64,000 nucleotides of DNA, from sequence record KJ019095.1; one strand, given 5' to 3'. Below the pieces are notes generated by a model. It saw nothing but the letters and a program-made list of their open reading frames with translations. It was not told where the DNA came from and searched no databases. Position numbers and translations under genes: made by a program. Below, piece after piece: positions 1 through 63,873 of the stretch. Each line of letters starts with the position of its first letter. Position 1 is the stretch's first letter.

Positions 1-1266
1 GAAGTTGAAAAGGAGTACTATGAACTCCTATTTGGTGATGGAATCTTTGGTAAGAAGCTAAAACAGGGACAACAACCTGTTGCAAGTTACATTTTGACTG
101 ATGGGTCATCAGGAAATGGACCTTCTAAGTTCAGTTATTCGGGTTCTGTGGTTAGTTCGACTGGTGGAGTGATAATCCCTACCAATACCATCGATATAAC
201 CACTGTAGAGAGTGCTAGGAATGGTGCAAATATTGAATCTGTTGACTCTGTAAGGTATTATGCACCCAAACTCTATGGTGCTCAGTATAGAAGTGTAACT
301 GCTCGTGATTACGAGGGTATTATTAAGGAAATTTACCCAAATACGGAGTCTGTCTCTGTTGTTGGTGGTGAAGAACTCGATCCACCCCAGTTTGGTAACG
401 TTTTAATCAGTATCAAACCGGTAAATGGTACCGAAGTCTCTGATTTTGACAAAAAGAACATATTGGAGGGGTTGAAACAGTACACAATCGCTGGAATCAA
501 CCAACAACTAGTGGATCTTAAGATTCTATTCGTCGAATTGGACTCTTATGTCTATTATGATGTAACTAAAGTGGCATCTGCTGACTCTTTGAAGACAGAA
601 GTCATTGGTTCACTCAATACTTACGCAAAATCAGTCGATCTTAACAAGTTTGGCGGTAGATTCAAGTATTCGAAGGCACAGAAGGTAATTGACGACACCA
701 GTATCGCTGTTACATCCAATATTACTCGTGTTGTTATCCGTAGAAACCTATCTGCAGCGATTGGGCAGTTTGCACAGTATGAATTGTGCTTTGGTAACGG
801 TTTTCACATCAAAGCATCAGGTGGAAACATCAAAACCACTGGTTTCCGCATTACTGGGTTGAATGATGTTGTATACTTAACAGATACACCAAATAAAGAT
901 GCAAATGGAAATGTAGATAACTCAGGGAAGGGTAAGATTTCCGTAATTACTGGAATTGCCGATGATAATGGTAGTTTCCGATATACTGTTGTTATTGATA
1001 AGGCAGGAACAGTGGATTATACAAAAGGAGAGATAATGTTGAACACTTTACAGATAAGTTCTACTGTTAAACCCAATAGAATTGTTGAAGTGCAGGCATA
1101 CCCAACATCTAATGATATTATTGGTTTGAAGGACCTTTATGTGTCACTAGCTGTTCCTGATAGTGAGATAAATATGGTTAAGGATACTATTACCAGTGGT
1201 GAGCAAATCTCTGGTGTAGGATTCAAAGTAACCTCCAGTTACGGCAACGGCAAGTTAACACGGTAA
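1..1266 (+). CDS. gp6: Baseplate wedge subunit gp6, 5'-truncated by the window edge
   Basis: The frame is open from base 1 (EVEKEYYELLFGDGIFGKKL...). It carries gp6 motifs (SVRYYAPKLY, RSVTARDYE, GGEELDPPQFGNV, FGGRFKYSK) and lies directly upstream of gp7/gp8. Confidence 0.9.
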   Translation, partial: EVEKEYYELLFGDGIFGKKLKQGQQPVASYILTDGSSGNGPSKFSYSGSVVSSTGGVIIPTNTIDITTVESARNGANIESVDSVRYYAPKLYGAQYRSVTARDYEGIIKEIYPNTESVSVVGGEELDPPQFGNVLISIKPVNGTEVSDFDKKNILEGLKQYTIAGINQQLVDLKILFVELDSYVYYDVTKVASADSLKTEVIGSLNTYAKSVDLNKFGGRFKYSKAQKVIDDTSIAVTSNITRVVIRRNLSAAIGQFAQYELCFGNGFHIKASGGNIKTTGFRITGLNDVVYLTDTPNKDANGNVDNSGKGKISVITGIADDNGSFRYTVVIDKAGTVDYTKGEIMLNTLQISSTVKPNRIVEVQAYPTSNDIIGLKDLYVSLAVPDSEINMVKDTITSGEQISGVGFKVTSSYGNGKLTR

Positions 1267-1278
1267 TAGGTATTAAAC

Positions 1279-4200
1279 ATGATCGGTACTGAGCTAGGTA
1301 TTGACGTGAGAGTTAAGATTCAGGATGTGGTTTCCTCACAACTTCCTGATTATATTTTAAGTGAAGCTCCACTCACCGACGATTTTCTAAAACAGTTTTA
1401 CATATCTCAGGAATACCAAGGCGGTACTGTAGATTTTGCGTCAAACCTAGATCAATACCTCTCTCTGACAACACTTGGCAGTGAGAATCTTTATACTGCC
1501 TTTGAACTTACACAAGATGTAAGTATTGATGATACTATTATTCATGTTAATACTACAAGTACCTTCCCCAACGAATGGGGTCTTCTAAAGATTGATGATG
1601 AGATTGTCACCTATACCGGTCTCACCACAAACACCTTCACTGGAGTTGTAAGAGGTTTCAGTGGTATTTCTAGTTACAGAGATTCTGATAATCCTTCCGA
1701 ACTTGTATTTGAAACCACAACCGCTGCCACTCACACTACGGAAACTAATGTTGAGAATCTATCAACACTCTTCCTAAAGAATTTCTACGACAAACTCAAG
1801 TATACCTTTGCTCCTGGTTTTGAGAACCTAGAGTTCAATAGTGAAGTTAGTGTTGGTCAGTGGATTCGTCAGGCAAGATCATTCTACCAATCTAAGGGTA
1901 GTGAAGAGTCCTTCAAGATTCTATTCAGAGTATTATATGGTGAAGATCCTCTAGTTATTGATCTAGAGCAGTTCCTTATCAAACCTTCCCAAGCAGAGTA
2001 CTCTAGAAGGGACTATGCGGTTGCTATTCCAGTCAGTGGTAACCCTATAACCCTCAAGGGTAAGACAGTGTATCAGAGTGATGCAGAGGACGTGTTTGGT
2101 GCCATCTCAGAGATTGAGACATTTACTAGAGATAACAAATTATATTACAGAATCTACTTCTTTGTTAGTAATGATGAAATTGCTAATGAGAGAAAACTAT
2201 TCACTATCCCTGGTAGATCAAGAACACAGAGAGGATGGAATCAGGGTGACACTACAATCACTGTAGATACTACTCTTGGGTTTAGGGATAACAACGAGTT
2301 TATCACTGAAGATGGAACTAAGTTTACTTACTTGGAAAGGACTGTTAATCAGTTCCTAGGTGTTGAGTGTAGTGATACAGAGAAAACACTAGGTACTAAT
2401 GAAGATATCATTGATGATATTACTATCTTTGGTATTAATGATGCTGGTGAGACTGTCTCACTACGTATGACTGGCGTTATCTCTGATATTGAGTTCCCCG
2501 ATGAAGTCCCATTCACTACACCTGGAGAGAAGATATCTGTAGATACCTTAGGTGAGAATATCATCTCTGCTGATGTAACTAGAAGTGAGCCTACACAGAG
2601 ACAGATCATTGCTAATAGTTTCATCTATAACACTTCAGTAAGAATGGAAGTAGATGAACTCAATGGTTCTGATTTCCAAATCAATACTGCCTACTTAGAT
2701 AAAGCTTTCATTTCTCCTGGTGACTCTGTTGATATTCTCCAAAGAGGCTCGCAGCTTGTCTATGTCGCTAATCGCAAAGTAACCTCAGTTGACTATCTCA
2801 ATAGTATTATAACAATCAATGACTCATTTGGCATCCCTTTAGATCAATCACTTGATATCAGAAGGAATCAGAACTATGCAAAGAGTAGCACTACAGATAT
2901 TGAGTATGGTCAGAACTCTGTTCTATCCAATGTTCTGAACCTTTATGATGCAACAGAGTTTGATGGTAACTTCTATGTTGCAACTAACTCCCTACCTTCC
3001 TATGATATGGAAGTTAAAGTTGTTGAGAGTATTCTTACTGGAGTTACTACTTCTAACTTTGAAGGATATAACTCATTCACTGATCAGTACTCAACAATTA
3101 TCTTTGATTCTGCCACTTCATTCATAACTGGTGATCTAATTTCATATAGAGTTATCTCAGTAGAAAGAACAGGTATTCCCCTTATCACTGAAGGTGAATA
3201 CTTTGTAGAGGTTCTCAGCAACCCCAGAAAGATTAAACTATATGTATCACCTTCCTTTATTGGAAGTGATAACTTTGTTGGATTCGTGTATAACGATGCA
3301 GTAGGTGCTCATGCATTCACTCTAGAGGAACAGAAAGATAGAAGAATCAATACTAAGAATGTATTCAAGAAGATTCCCTTCACAGCAACCAAACAGAATA
3401 TCACTATCCCTAGAACACCCGATGTAACCCCCTCAGGTTCCCCTGTGGCAGTTCTTACTAATGGTGTAGAGGTATTGTCATATAAGTCACCAGATAAGGT
3501 GTTCTTGGGTCCTTTAGAAGAAGTTGTTCCTGTTGCTTCTGGTGAGGGTTATAGTGTTATTGGACCACCCAATATCCTAATCACACCACCTAATATTCAA
3601 GTTACAGATCCAACTGGTATTCCTACTGATGGTGGTGTTGCTAGAGTATCACCAGTTATCTCTGGTAGGTTGAAGAAGATCTATATCGATCCACAAGACT
3701 TTGATATTGAGGAAGTATTCTCAATCACTGTTGTTGGTGGTAACAGTCGTGGTGCCACAGCAAAACCACAGATTTCTAAGAGAACTCGTTCTATCCCCTT
3801 TGATACGAGACTTGATATCTACGGTGGTGGTATTAATCCAAATGAAGAGACCATCCTATTCTTAACTGAACACAAACTCGCCAAGGGTGATGCAATTATC
3901 TACGAAAACAACGATACACAAAGTATTGGTGTTAATGTTGCTGGTGGTAGTAACATCTATAATGGCCAGACACTATCTAACGGTGCTGTGTATTTTGCAG
4001 AACCCCTTAATAATGTAACCATTAAGATCTATGAGACTCTAGAAGATTTGAACTTGGGTATCAATACCGTTGGGTTCACTTCAAGTCAAACTGGGTTTGG
4101 TGTTCAGGACTTTACTACTATTCCTAGAAACCAACTCACTGGTGCTCTCATCACAGATGATGGTGGTGAGTTTGTATATCGTAAGATGGAGTTCCAACCA

Positions 4201-7200
4201 GAGAACATCTATCCTGAGTATGATGAGTTGAGATACGACGGTCATGGTTTCTCCAGTGGTGATTTGGTGGAGTATGGAACCTTTGGTTCTGTTGTTGGTG
4301 GTCTATCTACTGAGAAGCAATACTATGTTGATGCTTTAGATGAAAATATCATCAAACTATCTGATGCCGGTATTGGTGGAACAAGTAGGTTTGACTATGA
4401 TAGGAAGGACTATGTTGATTTCACCAACATTGGTGTTGGAACACAGTTTATCAAGTACCCTGATGTCACTGTCAATGTTGTAGTATCCTATGCCTCGTCT
4501 ATCACTGGTATCATTACAGCAACACCTATTATCCGCGGTGGTATTATTCAAACTTATGTTGATACTGGAGGATACTATGGTTCTGATATTCTCAACTTCG
4601 CCAAGACACCAGAAGTAACAGTTCAGACTGGTGAAGGTGCTAGAATCAAACCAGTTATTGTTAATGGTAAGGTTACCACAGTTCAGATTCTAAGTAAGGG
4701 TATCAACTACCCACCCACACCAGATCTTCGTGTTATTGATAAGTCTCGTAAAGGTGCTGGTGCTCTTCTTCGCCCAGTAGTTATTGATGGTGCTATCCAG
4801 AGTGTTGTTGTTATTAGCACTGGTGAAAACTATGATCCATTGAATACTGATATTACAGTAATTGATCCTGCTAGACGATGTATTCTTGTTCCTAGAATTA
4901 CACCTCTCACAGTTAATACCTTTGCTAGATTTGGATTCGAAGGTCTATCTAATAATGACTACTCGGTTGTTGCCTATGACAGAAAGATTCGTGAGGATGT
5001 ATATGGTGACCTAGGTGCTTCCCACTCACCCATCATTGGTTGGGCAAACGATGGTAACCCCATCTATGGTGGTTTTGGTTTCGATGATCCAGAGAACTCC
5101 AGTTCTGGTTTCCGGGCGATGAGAACTTCCTATGAACTCTTCCCTGGTGAGATCTATGGTCGTCCCCCACTAACACTATATCCTGCTGGTTCTTTTGTTG
5201 AGGACTACAAGTTTACAGATAATGGTGATCTAGACATCTATAATGGTAGGTATGGTAGAACTCCTGAGTATCCTAATGGTGTGTATGCATACTTCGCTGG
5301 TATCTCCACTGATACTCAGTCACTAGCAAGAGAACCACAATTCCCTTACTTCATTGGTCCTGAGTTTAGGGATGGATTGGGTATTCAAGATAATACTGTA
5401 TCCCAAGATTTTGATATTAATAATAAGGATATTTTCCGTAATACTTTCCCATATGCCGTAGGTAACCCTATTATCGGCAGTGAGTTCCTAGATCAATCAT
5501 ACTTAGAGGATACTCAGGATTCTATTATACAATCTATCAATAATGGTACTGTTGATAACTTAACCATCGTTGGTGCTGGTGTTAGTTACTCTGTTGGTGA
5601 TATTGTTAATTTTGATGATACTTTCGACTACATTAGTGTAGTTGTAGATCAGGTAGATGGTCCCGAGGTAACACAGATTCAAACTCTCATCAAGAGTTAT
5701 GGTAAAGCAGAAACCAAAGTCATTAAAGTTGATAACACAACTGTTCGTGTTTATGTTGATCCCTTCCACGAGTATCTTGATGGAGATAAAGTTGTAATTA
5801 GTGGTCTATCAACAAACACAGATCAACTCAACGGGACTCATGAGATTAACTTCATGAGGGAGCAAATGACAATGTTTGCTCCTATTCCTCCTACTTTGTT
5901 TGAGACAGTATCTGATATCTTTGTCAATACTATTTCAGATAAGGTTTCTGTTGGTTCTAGTATTACTGTTGGTCTTGGCACTCTATCGGAGGATATGGAA
6001 GTTATCAACATCTTCCCTATTAATAAGGCACTTCGGGTTAAGAGACCAGTAGGTTATGGTTTTACACACCCAATTGGTGATGCTGTTAACATTGCTCCTA
6101 ATTACTTTGATATTAAGAAGAATGTAGATTCATTCCCGTCTGAGATTGATGTTGAGTACTACTTCAACCCACACCAAACAGTGGCAGTTGGATTGGAGAC
6201 TGGTGTAAGTGTTGGTTTGGTGTATTCAATTGGTACTATCGATAAGAATATCTCAGTACAGACTCAAAGAATATATGCACCATCCCATGGTTTCAGAACT
6301 GGTGAGGAGATTACTTTTGAGAAGAATGATACTGATACTGCATTAGTTGTAACAGACGGTAGTACTGTATATACACTACCTGGTGTAGGTAATACAAGTA
6401 ACGCATATGTTGTATCACTATCCAAGAACTATATTGGTATTAGAACAGTAACAGATGGTCCTGATCTATTCTTCTCTACTGATGGTTCCGATTCTCCTCT
6501 ATATTCTATTAAGACTAATCGTTTCGCTGAGACTGCATTAGTAGATAGAATTCAGGCAGAAGTTAAAACGAAAACGGATCATAGGTTGGGGAATGACGAT
6601 CAGATATTTACTGATGTTATTTCTTCTGGAAAATCAGGTGTAGGTACTAACCCCAACATCAAACTTGAGTTCGATGATTCATCACAATCACTTATTGTAG
6701 ATCCATACTTCACACAACCTAGTGATATTGATACGGTTAATAACCTAATTAATATCAATAACCACGGTTATACTAATGGGGATATTGTTCTATATCAAAA
6801 CTATGGAAGTTCTATTGGTGGTTTAACAACTCATCACAAATATTACACTATTCCCTTTGATAGGGATAAGTTCTATGTTGCTGAAACATTTGTTGATGTA
6901 AGACCCGGAACTAAACTACCTGTGAATCTAACTTCTGTTGGTATTGGTTCCCATAAGTTCTCCAAGGTCAATCCACCACTACTCATCACTAATAATAATG
7001 ATATTGAGTTTGATGTGTCATCACCAACTCTATTTGGTAAAACACTAGAATTCTTCTTTGATCGGACTCTAACTGAAATATTTGATAATAACAGTATAGA
7101 CAATGTATTTGTTGTTTCTGGTGTATCTACTGAGGGATACGAGGATGCTAGGAAGTCTATTAGATACTCTGATAACAATCCAGATGTATTCTTCTATGGT

Positions 7201-59505: not shown

Positions 59506-59520
59506 CCGAACATCATATGG

Positions 59521-59546
59521 GGGGAGTTCCACACTCCCCTTTTTTT
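59521..59546 (+). terminator. Rho-independent terminator after regA
   Basis: GGGGAG-ttccaca-CTCCCC followed by T7. Confidence 0.88.
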
Positions 59547-60129: not shown

Positions 60130-60166
60130 GGGGGGTCCTGTCACAAAACAGGGTTGCCCCCTTTTT
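60130..60166 (+). terminator. Terminator hairpin after hsp20, overlapping a sigma70 promoter (TTGCCC 60154, TATAAT 60176)
   Basis: GGGGG-TCCTG...CAGG-GTTG-CCCCC followed by T5. Confidence 0.7.
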
Positions 60167-60196
60167 GGTGCATGTTATAATATAGTATAAACTAAA

Positions 60197-60583: not shown

Positions 60584-60857
60584 AACTATTAGAGTATTGG
60601 TCTTGACCAATGGAAAAGTCCTTATCAGTAAGATCGAAGAGATAGGAGGTGCTGATATCGGGGAGCCAGACTGCCGTCTAACCGACCCAGTATGGTATAA
60701 TGATGAGGTGGAGGAAATGACTGAAGGGTTCAAACGCTTTCCTGGTAAGGGGATAACACCCGATACCAAGTTGGCCATCTCTTCTGTCAATATCTTGACT
60801 CTGGTTACCCCAGATAATAAACTCCTCAGTGAATACCTCGTGTTTATTAGTGATTAA
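60576..60857 (+). CDS. Hypothetical protein, Sm-like small beta-barrel family
   Basis: IRVLVLTNGKVLISKIEE...EPDCRLTDP...ILTLVTP, coupled to gp43. Confidence 0.65.
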   Translation: MDETIRVLVLTNGKVLISKIEEIGGADIGEPDCRLTDPVWYNDEVEEMTEGFKRFPGKGITPDTKLAISSVNILTLVTPDNKLLSEYLVFISD

Positions 60858-62332
60858 TGTCTAACAAGTTCTACACCAATGTTCAGCTTTATGGTAACAA
60901 CATCCTCCTACGCGGGTATGAGAACGGAGAGAAGTTTCACACTAGGGAACAATACTCTCCCACACTATATGTGAGTTCTAAGAAACCTAGTGAGTGGAAA
61001 ACACTTACTGGTGAGAATGTTCAACCAGTGAAACCCGGATCTATTAGAGATTGTAGGGATTTTATCAAGAAGTATAAAGATGTAGAGAACTTTAATGTGT
61101 TTGGTAATGAGAGGTTTGCCTTTCAATACATTGCAGACAACTATCCTGGGGAGATTGAATATGATCCTCAGTTGATTAATATCTTGAGTTTGGATATTGA
61201 GGTTGAGTCTGAACATGGTTTCCCAGATCCAGAGTCTGCTAATGAGGAAGTACTACTCATTACTATTCAGGACTATGTTACCAAACAAATCATTACTTGG
61301 GGTCAGATAAAGCATGGGGAGTTTGATAACCAACAGGATAATGTAGATTTCCGTCCCTGTGAGAGTGAGTATCACCTACTGAGTGCCTTTATTCAGTGGT
61401 GGCAACAGAACCCACCTGATGTTATCACTGGGTGGAACATTGACTATTACGATATTCCATACCTCGTTAGACGTATGAAGAGGGTGTTGGGTGATAAACT
61501 AGCAAGCACTATCTCCCCTTGGAAGTTCGTAACAGACGAAGAGCACTTCTTCAAGGGTATGAATAAACTATATTATAATATCGCTGGTATTACCCAACTA
61601 GACTACCTAGTTTTATACACTAAGTTCACATATACGAACCAAGAGTCATACAGACTAGACCACATTGCTAATGTGGAGTTGGGTCAGCAGAAGTTAGACC
61701 ACTCTGAGTTTGAAACTTTCAAAGACTTCTACCGAAAAGGTTGGCAGAAGTTCGTAGAATATAACATCGTTGACGTGGAACTGGTTGATAGGATGGAAGA
61801 GAAGTTGAAACTCATTGACCTTGCCATCACTATGGCGTTTGATGCCAAGGTTAACTTCCAGGATGTATTCTCACAGGTGAGACTATGGGATACTATTATC
61901 TATAACTATCTCAGGGATAGGAACATTGTTATCCCTCAGAAGGAACAGACTAGTAAGAGTGAGAAGTTCGCTGGAGCATATGTAAAAGAACCCAAACCCG
62001 GTCTATATGAATGGGTGGTGTCCTTTGACCTTAACTCCCTGTATCCTCACCTACTAATGCAATACAACATCTCTCCAGAAACATTGATGGAAGAGAGGTG
62101 TCCTAATATCTCCATTGAAAAGGTTCTCAATGAAGAAGTAACCTTTGAGATGTATAAAGACTATGCTGTTTGTCCTAATGGGGCAATGTATCGCAAAGAT
62201 GTCCGCGGGTTCCTACCAACCCTAATGGAAAAGATGTATGATGAACGAAAGGCGTTCAAACAAAAGATGTTGAAGTCCAAACAAATCCTCGTTGATATCG
62301 AGGCTGAAATGAAAAGAAGAGGTGTATTATGA
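60857..62332 (+). CDS. gp43A: Family B DNA polymerase, N-terminal half (gp43A: exonuclease plus Pol motif A)
   Basis: ExoI LDIEVESE, ExoII GWNIDYYDIPY, ExoIII YNIVDV and motif A SFDLNSLYP. It stops in the fingers domain. Confidence 0.93.
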   Translation: MSNKFYTNVQLYGNNILLRGYENGEKFHTREQYSPTLYVSSKKPSEWKTLTGENVQPVKPGSIRDCRDFIKKYKDVENFNVFGNERFAFQYIADNYPGEIEYDPQLINILSLDIEVESEHGFPDPESANEEVLLITIQDYVTKQIITWGQIKHGEFDNQQDNVDFRPCESEYHLLSAFIQWWQQNPPDVITGWNIDYYDIPYLVRRMKRVLGDKLASTISPWKFVTDEEHFFKGMNKLYYNIAGITQLDYLVLYTKFTYTNQESYRLDHIANVELGQQKLDHSEFETFKDFYRKGWQKFVEYNIVDVELVDRMEEKLKLIDLAITMAFDAKVNFQDVFSQVRLWDTIIYNYLRDRNIVIPQKEQTSKSEKFAGAYVKEPKPGLYEWVVSFDLNSLYPHLLMQYNISPETLMEERCPNISIEKVLNEEVTFEMYKDYAVCPNGAMYRKDVRGFLPTLMEKMYDERKAFKQKMLKSKQILVDIEAEMKRRGVL

Positions 62333-62487
62333 GTTTTCGTCACAAAACATATGGTGGTCTAGTTCATTATGACCACAATGATAAGATTATAGTCATTGAA
62401 CGTCGATTGAATCCAATGCAACATCACGCTATGCTTGTGAGTAAGTTGAAGGAAGAGTATCCAGAGTATCAAGTAGTTACTGGATAG
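62329..62487 (+). CDS. Small hypothetical protein (52 aa) inside the split polymerase, not in the ORF track
   Basis: MSFRHKTYGGLVHYDHNDKIIVIERRLNPMQHHAMLVSKLKEEYPEYQVVTG*. ATGA overlap and SD GAGGTG. Confidence 0.6.
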   Translation: MSFRHKTYGGLVHYDHNDKIIVIERRLNPMQHHAMLVSKLKEEYPEYQVVTG

Positions 62488-62702
62488 TGAGTGGTTTAGT
62501 TGCTGAGATTATGCAAGTCGTTACTATGATTACTATGCTATTCAATATGTGCAATAGTAATGAGTTCAACAGACAAGCATGTATGAAAGACTGGGATACT
62601 TGGTTATTACCTGAGATATCCCGTGCGTGGCAAATTAAAACAGGTCAGGAAGCCCCTTACCAAAACGAGGAAGATGTGGTAGAATGGCACCAACAGCAGT
62701 GA
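62487..62702 (+). CDS. Hypothetical protein (71 aa) inside the split polymerase
   Basis: GTG overlaps the previous TAG (alternative ATG at about 62510). Contains C...ACMKDWDTWLLPE...AWQIKTG...PYQ. Confidence 0.6.
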   Translation: MSGLVAEIMQVVTMITMLFNMCNSNEFNRQACMKDWDTWLLPEISRAWQIKTGQEAPYQNEEDVVEWHQQQ

Positions 62703-62703
62703 G

Positions 62704-63873
62704 GTGTTTATCGGTTATCTTATTGGTGGTTCGAGTGAAGGACCCGATGAGGAGATTGTACAATCAGATAGTGACTATTCTAAACTATCTGATAAGCAAC
62801 TGCAATACCTAAGAGCACAAACCATAAAGGATATTGCTAAGTTTTATAACTTCCAGCAAGTAAGGAAAATTACCCTAAACTCCGCTTATGGTGCTTTGGG
62901 TAACCAATACTTCAGATACTACAAACTGGCGAACGCGGAGGCAGTGACCTTCTCTGGTCAGTTAAGTATCCGTTGGATTGAGAATAAGATGAATGGATTC
63001 ATCAATGAGATTCTAAAAACAGAGGGTAAGGATTATGTGATCGCCTCTGATACTGACTCTATCTACATTAACTTTGGTGATGTGGTAGATAAGTTCTTGA
63101 AGAAGTTTGATGGTGATAAGGAGAAGACTGTATCAATGGTAGATAAGATCTGTAAGGATCAACTAGAACCCTTCATTGATAAGTGCTATTCTCAGTTGGG
63201 TGAGTATGTGAATGCATACGAACAGAAGATGCAGATGAAGAGAGAGAATATTGCAGACAGGGGTATCTGGACAGCAAAGAAGAGATATATCCTAAACGTA
63301 TGGGATAGTGAGGGTGTTCGTTATGAGGAACCCAAACTGAAGATGATGGGTATTGAGGCTGTGAAGTCATCTACACCTGCCCCTTGTAGAACTATGATCA
63401 AGGATGCTCTCCGTATTATCATTGAGAAATCTGAGGATGAAGTCATTGACTACATTGATGATTGTAGGAAGAAGTTCAAACAGATGAAACCAGAGGAGAT
63501 CGCGTTTCCTCGTTCCGTTAGTGATATGATCAAGTTTCGTTCTGGGACAACAATATATGCTAAGAGTACTCCTATGCATGTGAGGGGGGCGTTACTATTC
63601 AATCATCACATTAAGAAGGGTGGGTTGGAGAACAAGTATTCTCTCATCAATAGTGGTGAGAAGATCAAGTTCTGCTACCTCAAGATTCCTAATCTAATTG
63701 GTGAGAATGTTATCTCATTCATCTCCGACTTTCCTAGGGAACTTAAGTTGGAGAAGTATGTTGATTATGATACCCAATTCAATAAAGCATTCCTAGATCC
63801 ACTCAAGATCATCTTGGATGCTATTGGTTGGAACTGTGAGAAGCAGATGTCCTTGGAGTCATTTTTTACCTGA
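62704..63873 (+). CDS. gp43B: Family B DNA polymerase, C-terminal half (gp43B: motifs B and C, thumb, clamp-binding tail)
   Basis: Motif B RKITLNSAYG, motif C SDTDSIY, WTAKKRY and a C-terminal clamp-binding-like QMSLESFF. The start codon is non-ATG. Confidence 0.93.
   Translation: MFIGYLIGGSSEGPDEEIVQSDSDYSKLSDKQLQYLRAQTIKDIAKFYNFQQVRKITLNSAYGALGNQYFRYYKLANAEAVTFSGQLSIRWIENKMNGFINEILKTEGKDYVIASDTDSIYINFGDVVDKFLKKFDGDKEKTVSMVDKICKDQLEPFIDKCYSQLGEYVNAYEQKMQMKRENIADRGIWTAKKRYILNVWDSEGVRYEEPKLKMMGIEAVKSSTPAPCRTMIKDALRIIIEKSEDEVIDYIDDCRKKFKQMKPEEIAFPRSVSDMIKFRSGTTIYAKSTPMHVRGALLFNHHIKKGGLENKYSLINSGEKIKFCYLKIPNLIGENVISFISDFPRELKLEKYVDYDTQFNKAFLDPLKIILDAIGWNCEKQMSLESFFT

Follow-up and report, generated by a model that had tools for sequence, protein, structure and literature searches.

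Split gp43 of cyanophage ACG-2014f: a probable two-subunit replicative DNA polymerase broken at the fingertip

Introduction

In the stretch of DNA analyzed here (64,000 nucleotides of sequence record KJ019095.1, hereafter the window), which is Synechococcus phage ACG-2014f at 100% identity, the DNA polymerase gp43 is encoded by two genes, gp43A and gp43B, with two small ORFs between them. This locus raises the question of how the phage obtains its replicative polymerase. We conclude that the sole replicative polymerase very probably consists of two polypeptides that are produced by translational coupling and assembled non-covalently. The cyanophage split gp43 belongs to the class described in Aeromonas and Acinetobacter T4-like phages, and the surprise is limited because the principle is already established for those phages; a full-text search of the literature, together with the S-CREM2 and S-N03 papers, returned no description of a gp43 split in a cyanophage.

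The gp43 gene is a marker for cyanomyovirus diversity and encodes the core replicase of very abundant marine viruses. Its split form is widespread among ocean cyanophages, and the break point is a slot for varied extra genes. Because two-subunit gp43 is common, it can be mishandled by gene-calling software and by pipelines based on amplicons or markers.

Results

Architecture of the locus

The earlier note had described a gp43 that is split at the fingers with two unrelated ORFs in between, and all of its coordinates were confirmed, as was the placement of the halves in different frames. The four ORFs abut on the same strand (Table 1), and the 371-nt gap between gp43A and gp43B (62333–62703) is wholly occupied by ORF52 and ORF71. 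The neighbors of the split gene, gp44, gp62, regA, hsp20, uvsX, and gp41, form a T4-type replication module. The same four-CDS layout is present in 45 of 45 ACG-2014f GenBank records, which represent 41 separately sequenced isolates of this repeatedly isolated phage plus 4 RefSeq copies, and the independent metagenome contig L104 has a layout identical to that of the window; the claim that the split is not an assembly frameshift is thereby upheld. The 3017 bases of the locus show 100% identity in two isolates and 94–100% identity across the 45 records. GenBank already carries two "gp43 DNA polymerase" CDSs in the ACG-2014f records; the start codon of gp43B is wrong in several isolates, and one gp43A is labeled "adhesin."

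Table 1. Features of the split gp43 locus, in window coordinates
Feature	Position	Strand	Description
gp43A	60857..62332	+	N-terminal domain, 3'-5' exonuclease, first palm part (motif A), first fingers helix; 491 aa
First fingers helix and A tail (LMEKMYDERKAFKQKMLKSKQILVDIEAEMKRRGVL)	62222..62329	+	Placed by comparison with intact and split relatives
AAGAGG, Shine-Dalgarno-like	62317..62322	+	Within K-R-R-G codons of A tail, 6 nt 5' of ORF52 ATG; putative ribosome-binding site
ORF52	62329..62487	+	Small cargo gene, phrog_3538
ORF71	62487..62702	+	Small cargo gene, phrog_3571 (related to phrog_703)
GAGG, Shine-Dalgarno-like	62701..62704	+	5 nt 5' of ATC 62710; overlaps ORF71 stop
gp43B	62704..63873	+	Second fingers helix (motif B), remaining palm (motif C), thumb
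GYLIGG head motif	62713..62730	+	gp43B N terminus; not in intact gp43
Motif B, KITLNSAYGA	62866..62895	+	In gp43B
Motif C, SDTDSIY	63046..63066	+	In gp43B

The two halves and the break point

Between its ATG at 60857 and its TGA stop at 62330–62332, gp43A carries Exo I (LDIEVE), Exo II (GWNIDYYDIPYL), Exo III (YNIVDVEL), and motif A (FDLNSLYP), and it ends in …EAEMKRRGVL. Pfam assigns to it DNA_pol_B_exo1 (PF03104) and the beginning of DNA_pol_B (PF00136 positions 19–142), the remainder of which is found in gp43B, a reading frame of 389 codons if counted from GTG 62704. The pN/pS values are 0.00–0.05 for gp43A and 0.06–0.10 for gp43B, and both halves, including the codons of the gp43B head, are under strong purifying selection.

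The best matches among solved structures are T4 and RB69 gp43 (E = 4e-79 and 5e-67). The alignment of gp43A to the two ends at about residue 490–493; for RB69 gp43, gp43A extends to about residue 493, and gp43B covers residues 531–901. The break is thus located at the fingertip, where a turn exposed to solvent joins the two long antiparallel fingers helices. In the intact long-finger relatives RN05-S and S-B68, the same turn is read through without interruption. The structure predicted for gp43B as a single chain has a pLDDT of 64.6 with palm segments below 50, which is expected if gp43B is half of a fold; the GYLIGG head is modeled with low confidence, and the model is uninformative on this element.

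Every split form compared terminates its A half in K-(K/R)-R-G plus 0–2 residues. The AAGAGG within these codons in the window has an equivalent purine run 5' of the next cistron in all split relatives compared, and it would act as a ribosome-binding site.

Start of gp43B

The GYLIGG head is nearly invariant in two alignments (A3 and A5), and virtually every full-length gp43B-type protein among the 120 matches listed carries it. Differences between isolates in this segment are synonymous, which indicates that the head is translated. GTG 62704 is not conserved among ACG-2014f isolates, and therefore gp43B probably starts at ATC 62710, giving 387 codons. Of the five ACG-2014f haplotypes examined, four lack a canonical start 5' of the head, and all five keep the GAGG, which may help initiation. 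The codon preceding GYLIGG is ATG in nine lineages, TTG in one, and ATT or ATC in ACG-2014f and the lineages L016 and L030, and a purine-rich run lies 4–9 nt 5' of this codon in most lineages, with the exception of L029. ATC or ATT is an unusual start for the essential gp43B; in the window itself, initiation at GTG 62704 is possible.

Genes between the halves

The ATG of ORF52 at 62329 overlaps the stop of gp43A (ATGA). Its protein is identical in 44 of the 45 ACG-2014f records, and its frame is still open in the divergent contig L104 at 69% identity. The constraint on ORF52 is weak, as its pN/pS against L104 is 0.77, and its standing as a functional gene appears less secure. In MA01, S-N03, and S-H34, homologues of ORF52 adjoin a Dam methylase gene.

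The GTG of ORF71 at 62487 shares one base with the TAG of ORF52, and its TGA ends one base before 62704. ORF71 (pN/pS of 0.20–0.28) has an N-terminal hydrophobic segment (hydropathy 1.79 over the first 19 residues) and two conserved cysteines, features suggestive of a protein that is exported or sits in a membrane. The same gp43 junction holds a homologue in MA01 and S-N03, but in S-RIM2 the homologue follows mazG. A canonical phrog_703 copy near mazG in ACG-2014f was considered and rejected, the gene there being of a different family, phrog_3618. Neither ORF52 nor ORF71 has endonuclease similarity in Pfam or PHROGs, and no homing endonuclease gene was found between the halves in the window with these databases; such genes were found in L016, L030, and L058.

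Split and intact relatives

A search of relatives for intact versus split gp43 and for junction cargo found both forms and varied cargo. Relatives split at the same point, sharing the GYLIGG head of the B half and the K-(K/R)-R-G tail of the A half, are common in marine metagenomes. Their junctions hold nothing (a TAATG overlap of the two cistrons), a non-coding spacer, homing-endonuclease-like genes, purM, or small ORFs; the junction gene is phrog_374 in L016 and L030 (E = 2e-56) and phrog_655 in L058 (E = 2e-27), both of HNH/homing-endonuclease families. With at least eight different contents at the same break, the view of the junction as an integration site stands. The accompanying suggestion that the cargo is hard to lose does not, because close relatives (gp43 91–94% identical) differ in the presence of cargo and cargo-less forms are common; the cargo, absent or different in relatives, appears to be dispensable. 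A site within an essential gene is thus repeatedly reused for the insertion of accessory genes, including the auxiliary metabolic gene purM.

A first tree of the B half placed all split forms in one clade, which proved to be a sampling artefact: once 65 intact IMG/VR genes were included, the trees of both halves showed split forms scattered among intact ones. The idea that only the junction-proximal part was transferred was also rejected, as segment trees need 5–7 state changes everywhere. The window groups with L016 and L033 near the junction (97*) and with S-CAM7 elsewhere (98*); the S-CAM7 grouping is not rejected by the AU test (p = 0.45), and the differing placement near and away from the junction is suggestive only.

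Discussion

Proposed two-subunit polymerase

The genes gp43A, ORF52, ORF71, and gp43B most likely lie on one mRNA, on which translation would be coupled, each stop overlapping or abutting the next start (ATGA, TAGTG, and TGAgGTG…ATC). The K-R-R-G codons that end gp43A would double as the ribosome-binding site for the following cistron, and gp43B would most likely initiate at the ATC just 5' of GYLIGG with the aid of GAGG. The products, gp43A of about 57 kDa and gp43B of about 45 kDa, would pair through their extended fingers helices, with the palm completed by both chains, and the A tail and GYLIGG head may serve as a clasp. ORF52 and ORF71 would be passengers from small-protein families found elsewhere in cyanophage genomes rather than parts of the polymerase. 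As the earlier note had done, we infer a heterodimer of gp43A and gp43B from sequence; this assembly fits the pN/pS of 0.00–0.10 on both halves, the single polB locus per genome, and the viability of a phage that has been isolated 41 times. The cistrons of cargo-less relatives overlap as TAATG, and those relatives must therefore be two-subunit enzymes. Among the many natural fingertip-split family B variants, the conserved tail and head motifs may reveal how the halves hold together.

Alternative readings of the junction

A single full-length gp43 would result if the 371 nt were removed by splicing, as a group I or another kind of intron, which we regard as very unlikely. Joining the codon at 62329 to that at 62704 is in frame, by construction, and a group I intron reportedly lies in 43B of Aeromonas phage 25. 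However, Rfam gave no match at E ≤ 10 in 61800–63200 and none at the gathering score over the whole window, the predicted RNA fold of 62320–62720 is no better than that of shuffled sequence (z = +0.38), and the interval is full of two ORFs, one of which is under purifying selection by its pN/pS and belongs to a protein family; in relatives that share the tail and head, the stop and start overlap, so that an intron would not fit between them. Fusion of the halves into one chain by ribosome bypass or frameshift is just as improbable. Bypassing exists in the T4 phage group, in T4 gene 60, and in cargo-less relatives the halves overlap one frame apart; yet the window has 371 nt with two translated ORFs in the gap, and the cargo-less relatives have no conserved slippery sequence and carry a stop in the B frame a few codons 5' of the start. 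The codon preceding GYLIGG is, moreover, always of a start type, with the purine-rich run upstream of it in most lineages. An origin of the split in faulty assembly or sequencing, or in decay of the gene to a pseudogene, is scarcely credible: frameshifted polymerases are known in low-coverage contigs, and gp43A is broken in L104 (2.7x coverage) and L096 contains N, but the same structure recurs in the 45 records and in many independent metagenome contigs, both halves have the low pN/pS given above, and tblastn with gp43B finds a single place in each ACG-2014f record. A second intact polymerase, which the earlier note held would make this one a pseudogene, was looked for in each of these records by the same means and not found.

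Unlikely, though less so than the preceding readings, is the possibility that the split polymerase depends on ORF52, ORF71, or both as accessory subunits or assembly factors. In the distant MA01/S-N03 lineage, this junction likewise holds a phrog_703-type gene, which is the sole copy detected in the MA01, S-N03, and ACG-2014f genomes; members of the ORF71 family are located in replication or recombination modules, and tight coupling to the gp43 halves would match expression levels. Against this role, the junction of many split relatives lacks cargo or carries unrelated genes (an HNH-family gene, purM, or other small ORFs), the features of ORF71 point to the membrane or to export, and homologues of ORF52 adjoin dam elsewhere. 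Other known types of interrupted gene were also compared with the locus. A group I intron-interrupted gene was ruled out by the lack of a ribozyme fold in the intervening sequence, and a "fractured gene" with a split intein by the Pfam result of polymerase domains only in gp43A and gp43B; no more than 5 residues of the A tail lie beyond the homologous helix, and the B head comprises about 25 residues without intein blocks. A transposon-like insertion was rejected, no meaningful direct or inverted repeats flanking the insert. Matches to internal promoters or terminators in the junction are at chance level, and none is convincing.

Possible spread of the split allele

For the split polymerase itself, a tentative and rather doubtful extension is that the split-fingertip allele (tail, stop, Shine-Dalgarno sequence, start, and GYLIGG) is a cassette that spreads laterally in marine cyanomyoviruses and then becomes a landing pad for genes. 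Such a cassette would move into intact gp43 by short-tract recombination or endonuclease-driven homing, after which purM, endonucleases, and small membrane proteins would be gained and lost under the expression signals of the polymerase itself. If so, the split could alter nucleotide selectivity, as in Pfu, the AUU or AUC start of gp43B could set subunit stoichiometry, and the long intact forms RN05-S, S-B68, and L033 would be secondary re-fusions.

Comparison with known split enzymes

The precedent of split gp43 in Aeromonas and Acinetobacter phages, invoked in the earlier note, is correct. The halves lie 2 bp to 3 kb apart in the split phages listed, 133, 44RR, 31, 25, and 65 (PMC3061061), and those of phage 25 purify together and are active (PMC2988022). 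Among the closest known counterparts is Aeromonas phage 44RR2.8t, whose genes 43 (43A) and 43B are separated by untranslated sequence (Petrov et al. 2006, 2010). Like the window, it has a T4-type polB in a regA/clamp-loader neighborhood, cut at the fingertip, with both halves on one strand (A of about 498 aa and B of about 391 aa) and an A tail that likewise ends near R-G (…ILASRGVKLDH). In 44RR, unlike the window, the halves are separated by 49 nt of non-coding sequence that includes a hairpin and its own Shine-Dalgarno sequence but no ORFs, and the B head of 44RR (MELELFRDFNEEEL…) lacks GYLIGG. Phage 44RR belongs to the Straboviridae, whereas the window phage belongs to the Kyanoviridae, and the two breaks need not share an origin.

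Genes between the halves are shared with Aeromonas phage 25, in which a seg homing-endonuclease gene is inserted between 43A and 43B (PMC2988022), and with Acinetobacter phage 133 (about 3 kb). The cyanophage relatives L016, L030, and L058 resemble phage 25 in having HNH/homing-endonuclease-family genes at the break; the window differs from it in that its cargo ORFs have no endonuclease similarity and that there is no intron. Pfu PolB, a family B enzyme split at the fingertip and expressed from a bicistronic message by AUGA termination-reinitiation, retains wild-type activity (Hansen et al. 2011, PMC3061061), and the window uses ATGA-type coupling between gp43A and ORF52. The Pfu split, unlike that of the window, is artificial, in an archaeal enzyme with a short fingertip, and has no genes between the halves.

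The locus also resembles the "fractured genes" of marine metagenomes, in which cyanophage-like gp41 and nrdA are broken and carry split inteins; the gp43 of the window, in contrast, has no intein halves, and gp43 is not among the fractured genes reported (PMC2677866). A further likeness is to NrdA of Aeromonas phage Aeh1, where an essential enzyme gene is broken by a mobile gene, mobE, and is still functional (PMC2988022).

Organization of the gp43 locus

The T4-type DNA polymerase gp43 of the ACG-2014f window is encoded in two halves, gp43A and gp43B, with two small genes, ORF52 and ORF71, between them. Pfam divides the DNA_pol_B domain between the gp43A and gp43B ORFs, and motif location places Exo I-III and motif A in gp43A and motifs B and C in gp43B. 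All three forward frames are used across the four ORFs, and the non-polymerase interval spans 371 nt. In the window sequence, the gp43A stop and the ORF52 start form an ATGA, the ORF71 GTG shares one base with the ORF52 TAG, and a single base separates the ORF71 TGA from GTG 62704; base composition across the junction is not unusual. The two halves very probably form a two-subunit, translationally coupled polymerase.

Features of the window and junction contents of the compared loci (L-numbers, metagenome contigs or named phage records). Window genes are from the ORF listing and raw sequence; pN/pS values compare the window with four other ACG-2014f haplotypes and contig L104.
Locus	Feature	Coordinates	Strand	Description	pN/pS
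Window	terminator-like hairpin	59519-59541		strong; 9 bp and T-run; directly after regA	
Window	promoter-like site	60154-60181		best of the region; TTGCCC-16-TATAAT with TG; ahead of two DUF6561-type ORFs preceding gp43A	
Window	gp43A	60857-62332	+	ATG 60857, TGA 62330-62332; 491 aa; C-terminus ...LVDIEAEMKRRGVL	0.00-0.05
Window	ORF52	from 62329	+	ATG 62329; stop TAG	0.77 (against L104)
Window	ORF71	62487-62702	+	start GTG 62487; TGA 62700-62702	0.20-0.28
Window	gp43B frame	62704-63873	+	389 codons opening at GTG 62704	0.06-0.10
L012, L027/28, L031, L032	no cargo			nothing between halves; TAATG overlap	
L012	NUMOD3/phrog_314 gene	5168-5734		just after gp43B	
L024	spacer	1046-1140		95 nt, with hairpin, T-run and TATAAT; non-coding	
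L025, L026, L019	62-65-aa ORF	3313-3501 (L026); 520-708 (L019)		62 aa in L026 and L019; L019 also has a 78-aa ORF	
L016, L030	HNH-endonuclease-family protein	3508-3969 (L016); 1860-2315 (L030)		151-153 aa; phrog_374, E 2e-56	
L058	homing endonuclease	2828-3502		224 aa; phrog_655, E 2e-27; tail and head different	
L029 (IMGVR_UViG_3300037672_000034)	PurM	2535-3467		310 aa; full purM, AIRS and AIRS_C	
S-CREM2	hydrophobic ORF			98 aa, plus 86-nt spacer	
MA01, S-N03	phrog_703-type ORF			81 aa	

Over its 3017 bases the locus matches Synechococcus phage ACG-2014f isolates KJ019095 and KJ019150 at 100% identity; identity to 45 ACG-2014f records (41 isolates and 4 RefSeq copies; Kyanoviridae, Atlauavirus) is 94-100%. 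Two CDSs labelled gp43 DNA polymerase with hypothetical proteins between them are present in all 45, as are ORF52, whose protein is identical in 44, and ORF71. The independent metagenome contig L104 also has the four genes in this arrangement, neither small ORF being interrupted, at a synonymous divergence from the window of ~0.45 in gp43A, and tblastn reveals one polB locus per ACG-2014f genome. An assembly error and a dead gene are thereby both excluded. The earlier note had described these ORFs, which match the listing and raw sequence base for base; its rejection of a single-base assembly frameshift is borne out by the 45 records and L104, and its refuting condition of a second intact polymerase elsewhere in the genome is answered by the single polB locus.

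Within isolates, ORF52 differs at one position only, synonymously. Synonymous changes build up between isolates in the gp43B head (the N-terminal GYLIGG...), indicating that the head is translated. Two probable sequencing artefacts were left out of the split counts: a frameshift in gp43A of L104 (1648-3124; an ENA contig at 2.7x coverage) and an apparent split in L096 at the site of an N.

Position and nature of the break

In alignments with solved structures, gp43A matches the gp43 of T4 and RB69 as far as about residue 490-493, and gp43B matches RB69 gp43 from residue 531; the break thus falls within the tip that connects the two fingers helices. An intact gene with a short tip is the usual form of cyanomyovirus gp43, and the highly conserved tip sequence ...YEKTPTK.LEKEIARCNNIQMA occurs in 51 of the 53 intact genes from IMG/VR. 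A few intact genes, including those of RN05-S (...KLVDIESQLKNRDDPTLTKMKDQAIKDIAKFNNFQ) and S-B68, have a longer tip with helices matching the split forms; the tail of gp43A and the helix of gp43B in the window can be aligned to these genes, and the gp43A stop codon falls exactly at the turn. The gp43 of S-CAM7 (L003), to which the window's exonuclease domain is closest among intact relatives, carries just before the fingers a ~29-aa insertion (A1 columns about 418-447) that is absent from other cyanomyovirus gp43.

An intron, an intein, a transposon and a frameshift were each considered as the cause of the interruption and rejected. Rfam gave no match on 61800-63200 at E<=10, RNA folding of the gap is no stronger than that of shuffled sequence (z = +0.38), no repeats were found flanking the ORF52-ORF71 insert, and Pfam found no intein domain in gp43A or gp43B; the gp43A tail reaches only a few residues past the homologous fingers helix. 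Promoter- and terminator-like matches at the junction are at chance level. A scan of window 1-64000 gave no Rfam match at gathering score, so the 64 kb hold no tRNA gene or known riboswitch.

Start of gp43B and the gp43A tail

GTG 62704 is replaced by GTT in the other four ACG-2014f haplotypes, in which no ATG, GTG or TTG occurs from the upstream in-frame stop to the head. Among 17 loci compared, the codon directly before GYLIGG is ATG in nine lineages, TTG in one, and ATT or ATC in ACG-2014f, L016 and L030; a GAGG/GGAGG-like run lies 4-9 nt upstream of that codon in most lineages, L029 being without it. We infer from the sequence that gp43B would initiate at ATC 62710, by reinitiation after the ORF71 stop aided by GAGG 62701-62704. 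GenBank places the gp43B start of four records (KJ019148, KJ019101, KJ019059 and KJ019037; L105-L108) further downstream, at an ATG that is codon 53 or 65; the protein would then lack some of the second fingers helix or of motif B, and this start is almost certainly wrong. In the equivalent of window 62704-62900, the frame of these records stays open, and purifying selection acts on it, from the GYLIGG head on; together with the missing canonical start (GTT for GTG), this points to ATT or ATC.

Every gp43A ends in K-(K/R)-R-G codons (AAGAGGGG-like), and the start codon of the following gene, whatever that gene is, comes 3-9 nt after them; this placement may account for conservation of the tail even among distant lineages.

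Junction contents

Close relatives differ in cargo, the genes held in the junction, as in L012 versus L026 (gp43 91-94% identical) and L030 versus L032 (83-87%). The 62-aa cargo proteins of L026 and L019 are 85.5% identical, whereas their gp43B proteins are only 71% identical, suggesting that this cargo moved between junctions. The break thus serves as an insertion slot that is used repeatedly and whose contents turn over fast. The integration site proposed in the earlier note is upheld by the varied junction contents; its view that the cargo is hard to lose fails, since close relatives differ in it. Homing-endonuclease-family genes lie in or beside the split gp43 of several uncultured cyanomyoviruses (L012, L016, L030 and L058), and purM is a known cyanophage auxiliary metabolic gene.

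In ORF71 (phrog_3571, a relative of phrog_703), a segment at the N-terminus is hydrophobic, two Cys are invariant, and a D-W-L-PE...YQ-E pattern is present. Members of its family follow mazG in S-RIM2 and immediately precede a Rad52-like recombinase gene in S-CRES2 (L007 2923-3123), an unrelated 74-kb Synechococcus phage that is not T4-like; the usual phrog_703-family position in ACG-2014f is occupied by another family. Homologues of ORF52 (phrog_3538) adjoin dam in MA01-type phages. Both ORFs are treated as passengers because other split polymerases lack them.

Distribution and evolution of the split

A gp43B search limited to 214-680 aa, which excludes intact gp43, yielded 7611 matching proteins at E<=1e-30. 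The best 120 of these are 70-97% identical to the query, on contigs of up to 132 kb; 118 are 384-392 aa long, all but one of them with the (I)GYLIGG head. The matches lie in cyanomyovirus replication modules (regA, hsp20, DUF6561, uvsX, gp41, mazG). In an IMG/VR scan, gp43 is genuinely split in 10 of 76 classifiable loci, and the split is also found in cultured phages MA01, MA10, ME01, MC09, S-N03, S-H34 and S-CREM2. The S-CREM2 record labels the halves "DNA polymerase subunit A/B"; the gp43A half of S-N03 (NC_070959; L005 1005-2471) is labelled "adhesin" in RefSeq. Visible in GenBank annotation, the cyanophage split is yet apparently undescribed: the S-CREM2 and S-N03 papers do not discuss it, and the literature searched yielded no description of a gp43 split in cyanophages.

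In trees of both halves that include enough intact genes, split forms are scattered among intact ones. The window groups with S-CAM7, L031 with S-SKS1, L016 with L033, and L012 and L026 with RN05-S and L034 (L033, RN05-S and L034 being intact with the longer tip), and intact S-B68 falls inside the MA01/S-CREM2 group; no segment tree manages with fewer than 5-7 changes of state. Since the split forms share a GYLIGG head of clear homology, two histories are possible: lateral spread of the junction via short-tract recombination, perhaps with the help of an endonuclease, or an old split followed by several re-fusions. At the turn, the three long intact tips are all different, which fits independent re-fusions. 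In its exonuclease domain the window is closest to S-CAM7, and in residues about 360-580 to split forms; proximal and distal trees conflict (97* versus 98*), with a nonsignificant AU test (p = 0.45).

Comparison with known split polymerases

The account of natural fingertip splits in PMC3061061 (citing Petrov et al. 2006, 2010) names Acinetobacter phage 133 and Aeromonas phages 44RR, 31, 25 and 65, with halves 2 bp to 3 kb apart, and terms the fingertip an insertion-element hotspot; the precedent that the earlier note drew from such T4-like phages agrees with that account. The halves of phage 25, with a seg endonuclease gene between them, co-purify and are active (PMC2988022), and Pfu PolB split at the fingertip via AUGA termination-reinitiation is fully active (PMC3061061). 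The window is a cyanophage member of this class; the observation behind the earlier note is real and its interpretation largely right. What is added is a wide marine distribution, a conserved tail and head, a probable non-canonical gp43B start, and diverse cargo that includes purM and endonuclease genes. In 44RR2.8t (L111), read directly, gp43A ends ...ILASRGVKLDH, followed by a 49-nt hairpin spacer and gp43B starting MELELFRDF.... The break is at the same position as in the window, whereas the junction differs, 44RR2.8t gp43B lacking GYLIGG; its spacer is resembled in kind by the hairpin spacer of L024.
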